Part shown: positions 44,472 through 48,420 of the stretch, in pieces | How the letters are laid out: each line of letters starts with the position of its first letter | Position numbering within the stretch: the stretch's first letter is position 1 | Assembly (NCBI GenBank): GCA_033442325.1 | Contig: JAWQFM010000016.1 | Location: 1,391,459-1,455,458 of the forward strand | From: Salpingoeca rosetta | Taxonomy: Eukaryota; Protista; Choanoflagellata | Length of the DNA: 64,000 bases | Reading direction: 5' to 3' | Program-made: the position numbers and the translations under genes | Notes under the pieces: generated by a model | Database searches by the model: none | Seen by the model: the letters and a program-made list of their open reading frames with translations, nothing else | Told to the model about the DNA's origin: nothing

Positions 44472-47400
44472 TCAGAAGTACACGCGAGCAACGTGCTGCA
44501 TAATCTTGTGCAGCAGCTCTGCTGTCTCCTTGTCGTTGTCGTTGTCCAAGAGCTCAGCCCGCTTGTCTGCAAGCCACTGCAGCAGAATCGCCTTGCCCTC
44601 AAGCAACCGGAGCATGGCTTTGGAGACAGTGCCAGGCGAGAACACGTAGGCAAACAGCAGCGACTCCCAGTCCAGAACCACGTCCAGAGTTATGGTTTCT
44701 GGGTCGTGATGATGCAGCACACGCCGGGGGCGCTCCCGCAGCCGCGTGAAGTAGGACTCAGGAAGCTGTTCATCAGGTTCGCACATGAGACCAAAGTCCA
44801 CGATGCAGCCGTTGGGCAGGATGTTGTGCGAGCGGATGTCCATGTGACACAGACCGTTCTTCGACAACACAAGGAGGTATTCCGCAGCGGCTGTCAGCGC
44901 GTCCATGCCCTTGATGCCCGTGCCTTTTTCGGTCGGCGCCAAATGGGGAAAAGCAAGGACGGGGCGCGACCGCTGGTGCACTTCCACCTTCTCGCCTGGA
45001 TAGAGCAGTTGCCAGGCTTGCAGCTCGTTGTCTGCCTCCAGTTCCCTGGCAGCCGCGTCTGCTATGGCATCCTCCTCTTCGCTGGTCACACTCAACCCCA
45101 TAGCAGCCTTTGCTTTCCTGGCAGCCTCCAGTTTTCTGTCAAACGTCTCATAAACAAAAATGCCGTGGCCGCTGCACACCTTCAGCATCTTGCCGTTCAC
45201 CATTGCAACCACTGCTGTATCTTCACCGCCTTTGTAGACGCACATCTCGTATCTCGTGGCAACTTTGGCAGACCTGGCCCTTGCTCCTTTGGTGCCTGCA
45301 CGCTGACGCTTGTCCTTCTTGCTGCTGTCTGCTGTGTCAGTCTTGGTGGCCGCCGTCGTGTTCTCGGACCCTGATGCTGTCTTCGTGCTGCGCTTAGCGC
45401 TGACAGCCTGCTGCTGTGGCGTGGACCCTGACTGGGCTGCTTCTTCCTTGTCGCTGGTGTTAGTGGCGGTGGTGGTGCTGGTGGTTGTCGTGGAAGACGT
45501 GTCCGAAACGTCAGCAGTTGTTGTTGTCATCCCGGGTGCAAGTGCTGGGGTTGAGGGAGAAGGGTCCTCGCGTCCCTGTGTGTGTGTGTGTGTCATGTGT
45601 GTGTGTGTGTGTGTGTGTGTGTGTGTGTGTGTGTGTGTGTGTGTGTGTGTGTGTGTGGCATCGTTGGTTGTTGAGCGAAAGAAAAAAGGTGCACGAGGAA
45701 ACCACGAGGTATGTGATGATGACGGAATACCAAGACAGCAAGCAAGCGAGCAAGACAGCAAGAAGACAAGAAGACAAGCAAGGGAGTAAGTGGGCATCAA
45801 ATCACGCCTGCGACGGCTACCTGGGCAATGGCGGAAATCTTCTCGTAATGCGCCATGTGCTCTTCGTCGACCAGCCACTCAATGACATGCCCGAGTTTCT
45901 CCAACTAAAGTCCACAGCACAGAAAACCAATGTGAGCGCAGGTCCAACGACAATTAGCAGTATACAAGGCAACGGCCAGTCGACAGCAACAACACATGCA
46001 CACGTGCAGGATCATGTGTGGCAACACACAAACACACACACACACACAATGCACAGACGCACAATGCAAATATCCTCCTTCACTGTTCGCACATGCGATG
46101 GCAACTCACGTCAGTGTCGCCAAGTTTTGTGTAGAGGACGCTGGGAAAGGCCTCGCCACCGTGCATCTCCTCGCCCAGCGTGCACGCGTACACGGACACA
46201 TCATACATGCAGACGGTGATGGCAAAGGGAAACAAATACCCTTTCAACTGACGCCATTCCGGGCCTGCGGACTTGATGGCCTTTGCTGCGTACTCCAGCA
46301 CCTGCGCCTTGGCAGTATCCTGTGTCCGCCGGCTGTCGCGGGTCTTGAGATCAATCAACAGCGGGTAGCAGTCAACGTTCGAGTTGAGACGCACAGCGTG
46401 GTGAACGACAACAGTGGGGTCGGCCTCAAACGACGAGTGACTCTTGACGTTCACTGCTGCGCCCGCACACGCCCTAATCAGGGCCACGCTCATGCGGTCG
46501 TTGAATCGCGTCTCTGCCTTACGAAACACGCCACAAAAGCCTGCAGTGCAGCCGTGCAGAGCGCATTGGTTTGTGAGTGAATGAGTGAGTGAGTGAGTGA
46601 GTGAGTGAATGAGTGTGTGAGTGAGTGAGTGAGTGAATGAGTGTGTGAGCGAGTGAGTGTGTGTGTGTGTGAGTGTGTGTGTGTGTGAGTGAGTGAGTGT
46701 GTGAGTGTGTGAGTGAGTGTGTGCATCAGTGTGCATGTGTGAGCAAGATATAGAGATACGGTCCTTCAAAAGCAGCTCCTACATCAACACATTCGACAGC
46801 ACCAACACACGTGTCACATGCGCATCCTCGACAGTGGTCGTACTTTTGTGTTTGTCCTTGCGATTGATCGTTTTCAACCACTCGTTGTGCAGGTGCCAAT
46901 CAGGGCAGAGAAGCTCGGCCGAGAACGGCTGCGCATAGACCGTTCTGTGGGCAACATCCCTGCCCTTCTTCTTCTCCTTGGCAGCATTGCAGGGGTCTAC
47001 ACTCGACTGCAACTCTGCATGATGCACATGAGCAGCCAGAATGAGTTCCAACAATGCGCCGGCAGCGCGTTAGTCAGACTGAAACGTCGCTGTTGCACGT
47101 TCTCTTCCACGCCGACGTCACACAGACAGAGTGCTCACGCGCAGCAACTATTGGAACAACACTGATGCGCACACGCACACCCCCCAACCCACCCACACGC
47201 ACACACACCCACCCACACAAACACAGACACACACATACACACGCACAACGGTACAGTTGTTCACTCAGCCACACATGTAAGACACACCACCAAGCAGCAA
47301 GGACAAGGTCAGCGCACCTTGTCGAAACTGCCCCAGCTCTTTGTGCTCGGCTGGTCCTTTGCGTGCGAAATTGTCAAGGCGACGCAGGAAGCTTTCGGCC

Positions 47401-48420
47401 TCGTCGAAGGTCACCGTCTTCTTGATGTCGAACACACTGCGGATTTCCTGCAGTAGGGTCTTGATGTCTTCCGTGAAAGACACCTCCATCATGTTGTGGA
47501 GGTATGCCCTTGTGGCAGGTTTCTGGGGGGCACGCCACACTGGAAGAACTTCAATCCCATTCTTGGTGGCAATTGTTCGGATCTTCTCGGCAAAGGCGTG
47601 GTATTGTGAATTGGCGTCTTGCTGGGTGCCCTCCAGAAGGCTCGTGTACGCTGCTGTTGCTGCTTGCAAATATGCGCGCGCAAGAACGCCAACCTTATCG
47701 GAAGGGGAAGAAGAAGTGGGTTGAACAAGATATGCAGCAGGTGTGTACAAGTGAGAAGGGGAGAGCACTGTGGTGTGCATGTTGACGGCATTTGTGGGCA
47801 ATAATGCCACTTTCCAAGAACACACACACATTCAGACACAGCCACAGACAAGACAGACACGCAGACAGACAAAGAAAGGACACTCACCTCGTTTGGCGGC
47901 AGGGTTGTGTAGACTACAGGGACATCTTGGGACGCTTCCGTGCTGTCATCGGACGAATCACCCTTGTTGTGTGTTTGTGTGTGCGTGTGCGTGTGTGCGT
48001 GTGTGTGTGTGTGTGTGTGTGTGTGTGTGTGTGTGTGTGTGTGTGTGTGTGTGTGTGTGTGTGTGTGTGTGTGTGTGTGTGTGTGTGTGTGTGTGTGTGT
48101 GTGTGTGTGTGTGTGTGTGTGTGTGTGTGTGTGTGTGTGTGTGCAAAAGCGCGCGCGTGCGTGTAACGGTGTGTGAGCAAAAGTGCGCGCGTGTTCTGCT
48201 TCTAGCATCACACGCTGACGCATGCCACACGCTGCATGCGCTAAAAGCCACGCAAAGCGACGCCCTCCCTCGTCAGTTCAGTGTCTTCCCCTTCCCCCAT
48301 TCAACCGCCTTTCCACATTCCCTTTCCACCTTCCCACCCGTTCAGTCGTGCAGTCGACAAGCAAGGGAGACGAGGGAGGTGTGCAGGTCTCACCGGGGTG
48401 TAGAAGTCCCACGCCGACAT
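44472..48420 (-). CDS. Putative CR (Crinkler/RHS)-type protein: helical N-terminus + PD-(D/E)xK-like nuclease domain + low-complexity linker + atypical FunK1-like kinase, ~760 aa, ~7 exons
   Basis: Phase-compatible exons from MSAWDFYTP (48420-48394); exon 46110-46540 with AETRFND..FEADPTVV..PLLIDLK..AKAQVLEYA; last exon 44472-45576 with KMLKV, ADNELQAW, HMDIRSHNIL, IVDFG, LDWESLLF. Confidence 0.65.

Follow-up and report, generated by a model that had tools for sequence, protein, structure and literature searches.

We analysed a 64,000-nucleotide stretch of the genome of the choanoflagellate Salpingoeca rosetta (contig JAWQFM010000016.1, positions 1,391,459 to 1,455,458; hereafter, the window) and describe here the minus-strand gene PTSG_06416, which lies at positions 44472-48420 of the window and is publicly annotated as a 755-residue 'hypothetical protein' (model P0001). 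PTSG_06416 is a genuine, intact cellular gene of S. rosetta. Its product combines a helical N-terminal header, a domain predicted to adopt a restriction-endonuclease (REase) fold, a disordered linker and a divergent protein-kinase-like domain. On balance we think it probable, with appreciable room for doubt, that PTSG_06416 represents a lineage-restricted, fast-evolving family of header-REase-fold-kinase proteins whose members most plausibly act as kinase-regulated nuclease-fold modules, and for which we only infer a role in biological conflict.

Gene model of PTSG_06416

A word search showed that the last 284 residues of the 468-residue minus-strand open reading frame (ORF) at 44475-45878 are 100% identical to PTSG_06416, whose public record is positioned at GL832968.1:1,435,930-1,439,878. 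When mapped onto the window, the public protein falls into seven exons separated by six introns, all six of which are GT-AG and phase-compatible; junctions were checked by comparing the split codon at each GT..AG with the corresponding residue of the public model. Note that exon-level queries were made with the window DNA and whole-protein work with the public model. The gene is laid out as follows (all features on the minus strand):

44472-48420: coding span of PTSG_06416, with the ATG at 48420 and the stop codon at 44474-44472
48394-48420: exon 1, residues 1-9, with donor GTGAGA
47888-47962: exon 2, residues 10-34, acidic and predicted to be disordered (mapping, model)
47318-47693: exon 3, residues 35-159, helical N-terminal header (low-confidence model; ratio of non-synonymous to synonymous substitution rates, dN/dS, 0.3-1.0)
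46844-47014: exon 4, residues 160-216, conserved stretch joining the header to the nuclease-fold core (mapping)
46110-46540: exon 5, residues 217-360, predicted REase-fold (PD-(D/E)xK-like) core (AlphaFold, Foldseek)
45821-45904: exon 6, residues 361-388, two helices closing the nuclease-fold domain (mapping, full-length model)
45255-45575: first part of exon 7, residues 389-495, disordered linker in which Ser/Thr/Ala/Pro/Gly/Gln account for 69% of residues, ending in a basic patch
44475-45254: remainder of exon 7, residues 496-755, divergent protein-kinase-like domain (model, Foldseek, conserved residues)

The original prediction, made from the letters of the window, had proposed a protein of about 760 residues over the same span, with bounds that were right to within 1-3 bases. 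Its middle exon (46110-46540) is exactly exon 5 of the public model, its header (47319-47690) coincides closely with exon 3, and its choanoflagellate host is identified as S. rosetta by the 100% protein identity. It had given three coding regions, to which the public model adds four short exons.

The middle domain is predicted to have a restriction-endonuclease fold

Exon 5, folded by AlphaFold from a 14-row family alignment, yielded a model with a predicted local distance difference test (pLDDT) score of 80.9 and a predicted template modelling score (pTM) of 0.73, in which secondary structure elements succeed one another in the order alpha-beta-beta-beta-alpha-beta (helix 5-23, strands 29-36, 44-51 and 60-65, helix 70-90, then three more strands, the first at 102-110). 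In a Foldseek search with this model, 12 of the 13 Protein Data Bank (PDB) matches at a probability of at least 0.5 were REase-fold proteins, with probabilities of 0.72-1.00 for the top matches. The best was the nuclease domain of BpuSI (E 2.7e-3, probability 1.00, template modelling (TM) score 0.47); others were the putative REase 9y1l, DUF820, DrdV, 3ijm, TT1808, 6okh, the R2 nuclease domain and BsoBI. The named matches in BFVD, a library of viral proteins, were PD-(D/E)xK, Cas4, exonuclease VIII and UL24 proteins.

The conserved columns sit in the model as this fold requires, with Glu226 in helix alpha-1, position 263 at the start of strand beta-2, D280-x-K282 at the end of beta-3 and Q296...Y300 in alpha-2 (all codons on the minus strand):

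46512-46514: E226, helix alpha-1, Glu in 14 of 15 aligning relatives
46401-46403: H263, start of strand beta-2, Asp in 14 of 18 relatives
46344-46352: D280-L281-K282, end of strand beta-3, (D/E)xK motif (model, alignment)
46290-46304: Q296-Y300, helix alpha-2, QxxxY-type motif (model, alignment)

Of 18 relatives, 16 have Glu or Asp in column 280 and 15 have Lys in column 282. The complete E / D / (D/E)xK set is kept in 14 of the 18, most of which also keep Q...Y, and the core motifs are wholly lost in the paralog P0016. Constraint on exon 5 is seen in its dN/dS, which is 0.40-0.59 in comparisons with five paralogs. Taken together, an REase fold is well supported as the predicted structure of this domain, an assignment based on structure prediction and motif geometry with no significant sequence match. 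This agrees with the original prediction, which had read the middle exon as REase-like; all the motifs that it quoted from this exon were found (E226, IDLK at 279-282 and AKAQVLEY at 293-300). Its choice of catalytic Asp, D257 of an EADP motif, did not hold: distant paralogs do not conserve that column, and the position conserved across the family is 263.

PTSG_06416 itself retains E226, D280, K282, Q296 and Y300, and its catalytic set is broken by His263. The nuclease competence of this copy is therefore doubtful: with His in place of the metal-binding Asp, its action on nucleic acid may be limited to binding, or it may cleave by a different chemistry. Public records name PTSG_06416 'hypothetical' and its paralogs 'kinase'; no Pfam domain is precomputed for the family, so that the nuclease-fold domain goes unannotated.

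The C-terminal domain resembles protein kinases

In the full-length model, residues 510-755 have a bilobal kinase fold with pLDDT mostly between 75 and 92. Foldseek returned 187 PDB matches at E<=1e-3 to this domain; all among the matches listed are protein kinases, with IRAK4, VRK1 and Aurora C as the top structural neighbours. A family profile compared with PDB sequences also found kinases alone, as 160 weak matches around the catalytic loop. The main kinase elements were placed as follows (minus strand):

45180-45182: codon of K520, beta-3 Lys within KMLKV (alignment)
44823-44846: catalytic loop H632-N639 (HMDIRSHN), with D634 and N639 invariant
44790-44798: DFG, residues 648-650 (alignment)
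44661-44672: DWES, residues 690-693, in a helix matching kinase subdomain IX (model, alignment)

Among aligning kinase-bearing relatives, K520 is conserved in 13 of 13, D634 and N639 each in 14 of 14, and D648 in 13 of 14. Between the DFG and DWES motifs of PTSG_06416 we found no A-P-E, and no glycine-rich loop could be recognised at confidently modelled positions. E669, which lies between DFG and the D690-x-x-S693 helix, is invariant and perhaps takes the place of the glutamate of the absent APE motif. DWES occurs in PTSG_06416 and in all 10 close kinase-bearing paralogs; the distant paralogs keep its Asp and Ser only. The last exon had been called an atypical kinase with a DxES-type subdomain IX. 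The kinase fold, the intact catalytic residues and the lack of APE bear out the first part of this claim, and each of the motifs cited for it is in place (KMLKV 517-521, DNELQAW 570-576, HMDIRSHN 632-639, DFG 648-650 and DWES 690-693); the second part stands for the close subfamily and fails for the distant paralogs.

At the level of sequence profiles the domain is hard to place. Against the Pfam models Pkinase and PK_Tyr_Ser-Thr, PTSG_06416 gave no match at E<=1, and the best paralogs scored 17.5 bits (cutoff 31.7) and 17.3 bits (cutoff 23.1), respectively. When three long ORFs and 21 family proteins were compared with Pfam, PTSG_06416 gave noise only (DUF5898, E 0.04-0.07; APH, E 0.03-0.1). 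Searches of PDB sequences with the exons found nothing meaningful, and PADLOC and NCBIfam gave weak matches to the catalytic loop only, in three distant paralogs (PD-T4-6, mad6, Bud32, LanKC). We conclude that the C-terminal domain is probably an active kinase-fold enzyme, as modelled, without a demonstrable family.

Two local features of this region vary among copies. A helical insertion of ~35-45 residues between kinase beta-3 and the long helix that comes next (residues ~525-569, window 45150-45020) is present in PTSG_06416 and P0007 only. P0002, P0004, P0005 and P0003 carry 2 to ~8 tandem charged units of ~13-14 residues before the last kinase helix (alignment A1, columns ~775-890), which are absent from PTSG_06416.

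Header and N-terminal region

The full-length model has a mean pLDDT of 61, with low-confidence helices over residues 1-200, a confident segment at 229-387 and disorder at 394-509. Pfam has no match to the first 200 residues, and this region evolves fastest, with dN/dS up to 0.8-1.0. The first-helix motif of the header is common to the distant paralogs P0013 and P0014, which places the header within the family. The all-helical model and the lack of a Pfam match accord with the proposal that the header is helical rather than of the ubiquitin-like LFLAK type. An absent signal peptide had also been proposed, in line with the hydropathy and charge of the protein (maximum Kyte-Doolittle 19-residue mean 1.43; net charge -7 over the first 35 residues).

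PTSG_06416 belongs to a lineage-restricted family

A profile built from the six first-found paralogs, searched against 1.84 billion representative proteins, retrieved only 12 proteins at E<=1e-3, of which all that are named come from S. rosetta. Two additional word searches brought in more paralogs, all of them from S. rosetta. In searches covering 1.8 and 5.8 billion proteins, the only relatives found were from S. rosetta, apart from two fragments from sequencing run SRR24908322 (Logan). The family comprises at least 17 S. rosetta gene models on at least 12 supercontigs. Of these, 12 are close paralogs (P0001-P0008, P0017-P0020), ten with the full layout, one without the kinase (PTSG_08312) and one, PTSG_11197 (243 residues), modelled as a header only. 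The other five (P0012, P0013, P0014, P0016, P0021) are distant, being 22-35% identical to PTSG_06416 with the same domain order. Full-length members run from an acidic tail and helical N-terminus through the REase-fold domain and a Ser/Thr-rich disordered linker with a basic end to the kinase-like domain. We looked for a second family copy within the window and did not find one. The check on copy number thus gave a lineage-restricted family of 17 paralogs with no ortholog outside the lineage, and not a single-copy gene of the RIO/Bud32 type.

The SRR24908322 fragments lie on two short contigs with a GC content of 0.55-0.56; their nuclease-fold domains are 36-41% identical to S. rosetta members and indicate that at least one other organism has the family:

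L001:804-1316: nuclease-fold fragment from SRR24908322, conserved Asp and ExK motif kept
L002:683-1060: nuclease-fold fragment from SRR24908322, conserved Asp and ExK motif kept

Against five paralogs, dN/dS is below 1 in every exon (0.3-1.0, with synonymous divergence, dS, of 0.1-0.6). The motifs quoted in the original prediction are more than chance, since the same columns are conserved in up to 18 relatives and every exon has a dN/dS below 1. At the DNA level, copies are 65-86% identical, with similarity that runs through the introns, ends at about the gene ends and reaches no further than ~300 bp beyond the stop codon; the copies share no flanks. At each of the seven loci examined, the copy has ordinary genes next to it, encoding for example RNA polymerase subunits, RNase PH, ThiF and Alg6/8.

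The comparison of PTSG_06416 with P0004 is mosaic (window 46549-45705 against L009:11387-12198): identity is 84% over exon 5, intron 5 and exon 6, with an exon-6 dS of just 0.06, and 65-70% in the parts coding for header and kinase. Such a pattern suggests gene conversion or recombination between paralogs. In PTSG_08312 (P0008, 404 residues; L005:5462-7882), DNA homology begins ~540 bp upstream of the annotated start and stops inside the linker. The latter marks the copy as truncated before the kinase; judging from the former, the public model probably misses upstream exons.

Weighing the explanations

In the mechanism that we propose, the nuclease-fold domain would bind nucleic acid and, in most paralogs, also cut it, under the control of the attached kinase, an arrangement already suggested for REase-kinase modules in Crinkler/RHS-type (CR) effectors. 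Restriction to one lineage, copy number and high dN/dS would fit conflict, defence or self/non-self discrimination. We infer a conflict or defence role from analogy and fast evolution only. Several observations weigh against this interpretation. When the exact protein was looked up in public assemblies, transcript support was not found and the genome record alone was returned. PTSG_06416 stays below the cutoff of every Pfam, NCBIfam and PADLOC model, and the nuclease-fold domain in particular has no match in Pfam or among PDB sequences; the exon-5 model has no Foldseek match at E<=1e-3, in the PDB or in BFVD, and its TM-scores are only 0.33-0.47. His at column 263 is confined to PTSG_06416 and its nearest relative, PTSG_08312. 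Among the 1.84 billion representatives the header was never joined to another C-terminal module, occurring with the same module or as a fragment, and by hydropathy and charge we saw neither a signal peptide nor a membrane segment, no dedicated predictor having been run; delivery into another cell is therefore without support. Finally, the high dN/dS could be due to relaxed constraint instead of conflict.

Part of the same evidence suits an endogenous family of signalling or regulatory kinases that plays no part in conflict and arose by ordinary duplication, its nuclease fold having degenerated into a non-cutting module that binds nucleic acid or protein. Kinases are known to have expanded greatly in S. 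rosetta. His replaces the conserved Asp in PTSG_06416 and PTSG_08312, P0016 is without core motifs, neighbours are ordinary at seven of seven loci, and the header, always with one module, is not preceded by a signal peptide. However, the full catalytic set in 14 of 18 relatives points, at the sequence level, to a working active site in most copies, and the dN/dS of 0.4-0.6 in the catalytic domains is above what we ourselves would expect of typical signalling enzymes. We judge this explanation to be possible and somewhat unlikely. Going the other way, S. rosetta might hold a private, fast-diversifying arsenal of header-nuclease-kinase proteins against viruses or bacteria, or for self/non-self discrimination, as a counterpart of Crinkler-type systems in which nuclease-active and His263 members differ in role; this picture we regard as unlikely. 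The original prediction had noted that CR effectors and FunK1 kinases derive from mobile elements, and one may picture the gene as the cargo or remnant of an element that spread the nuclease-kinase unit. Copies are indeed dispersed over at least 12 supercontigs, their DNA similarity spans the whole gene unit including introns, and PMC5289972 connects REase-nucleoside triphosphatase (NTPase) modules in CR proteins with transposons. Yet this similarity stops near the gene ends, a repeat scan around PTSG_06416 found microsatellites only and no terminal inverted or long direct repeats, and no transposase or integrase domain is encoded in the gene or adjoining it. With an identity of 65-86%, the copies did not arise by recent duplication. 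We found no sign of a mobile element and, as the paralogs have no common flanking DNA, set this origin aside and give it little credence. We give still less to a wrong merger of adjacent nuclease-fold and kinase genes in the gene model. The failure of the exact-protein lookup to return a transcript contig with the full protein, the end of PTSG_08312 before the kinase and the header-only PTSG_11197 would all suit such an artefact. Against it, the same order was modelled at independent loci for ten close and about five distant paralogs, the six introns are regular, exon 7 has neither a stop codon nor a start context between linker and kinase, and the DNA homology of PTSG_08312 itself ends inside the linker, which indicates truncation and not a split gene.

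With a kinase-regulated nuclease-fold module as the preferred interpretation, the 17-member family offers, in a genetically tractable choanoflagellate, a candidate set for possible Crinkler-like conflict or immunity in the closest relatives of animals, and the copies with and without the conserved nuclease Asp provide a natural contrast. Should its members be ordinary signalling kinases with a dead nuclease fold, they would exemplify a domain retained as a regulatory module.

Genomic surroundings

Genes for PC4 and a ZIP transporter lie upstream of PTSG_06416 and a gene for an SH3-SH2 tyrosine kinase lies downstream, which is consistent with the earlier description of a gene amid ordinary genes. 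The PC4 gene is head-to-head with PTSG_06416 at a spacing of ~126 bp (window 48421-48546), and two paralogs are also head-to-head with their neighbours, at ~117 and ~129 bp (L004:5884-6000, L008:5872-6000); such short spacings could be chance in a compact genome. Other features of the window are:

30811-33627, plus strand: gene for a sortilin/Vps10 protein with a thrombospondin-type repeat, an animal-like signalling gene
41424-43903, minus strand: SH3-SH2 tyrosine kinase gene, likewise animal-like and signalling
25271-25356, plus strand: tRNA-Leu (anticodon CAA) predicted by ARAGORN
44150-44253, 45577-45657, 46037-46068, 46573-46723, 47170-47247 and 47968-48143: microsatellites in the introns and 3' flank of PTSG_06416

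The microsatellites, of the CA/TG or TCAC type, occupy all but one of the six introns as well as the 3' flank, and give rise to long 'THTH' and 'CVCV' pseudo-ORFs on both strands.

Comparison with known systems

Literature searches by PTSG locus tag, on Crinkler in Salpingoeca, and on FunK1 together with either restriction endonuclease or Crinkler gave nothing of relevance. The comparison was made with four kinds of protein. Like PD-(D/E)xK nucleases (BpuSI, 3s1s; the DUF820/Uma2-type proteins 3ot2 and 1wdj; DrdV, 7lvv), the middle domain has the predicted core topology with E, D, (D/E)xK and Q...Y in place; it differs in an identity of only 9-15%, TM-scores of 0.35-0.47, E-values of 3e-3 or worse and, in PTSG_06416, His for Asp. 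With eukaryotic protein kinases such as IRAK4, VRK1 and Aurora C, the C-terminal domain shares the bilobal fold, the beta-3 Lys, His-x-Asp...Asn and DFG, whereas PTSG_06416 reaches no profile cutoff and has neither APE nor a confident glycine-rich loop. Among other kinase-like families, APH is matched above its generic cutoff by the paralog P0013 alone (25.5 against 23.2 bits), and matches to Bud32, RIO, LanKC and PD-T4-6 are short and far below cutoffs (for Bud32, at best 24.8 against 125 bits).

FunK1 (Pkinase_fungal, PF17667), to which the kinase had been likened, is also a divergent kinase with a lineage-specific expansion. The profile test did not sustain this kinship: in the distant paralog P0012 the top Pfam match is to Pkinase_fungal, from the catalytic loop to subdomain IX, at 18.6 bits (cutoff 24.1; E 8.4e-4), and PTSG_06416 and 15 other relatives, from a choanoflagellate and not a fungus, do not match PF17667.

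The closest parallel in layout is with CR effectors, as summarised in PMC5289972 from Zhang et al. 2016, with Phytophthora CRN8 as the example named. About one-sixth of Crinkler/RHS-type C-termini pair an REase-fold domain with a kinase that is thought to regulate the nuclease, and some CR headers are alpha-helical (PMC5289972). The CR comparators are injected effectors of a crop pathogen, and no such delivery is indicated for PTSG_06416. Unlike them, PTSG_06416 is without a ubiquitin-like LFLAK header, its header is not shared with alternative toxin modules, and His stands at the position where its own family conserves the nuclease Asp. The CR-effector architecture claimed in the original prediction stands as regards the order of REase and kinase, and membership of PTSG_06416 in the Crinkler/RHS-type class, suggested by analogy, is unproven. 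What the two do have in common, by a likeness of layout alone, is a header followed by an REase-fold domain and a protein kinase, together with a lineage-specific multi-copy expansion and the lack of a classical signal peptide.

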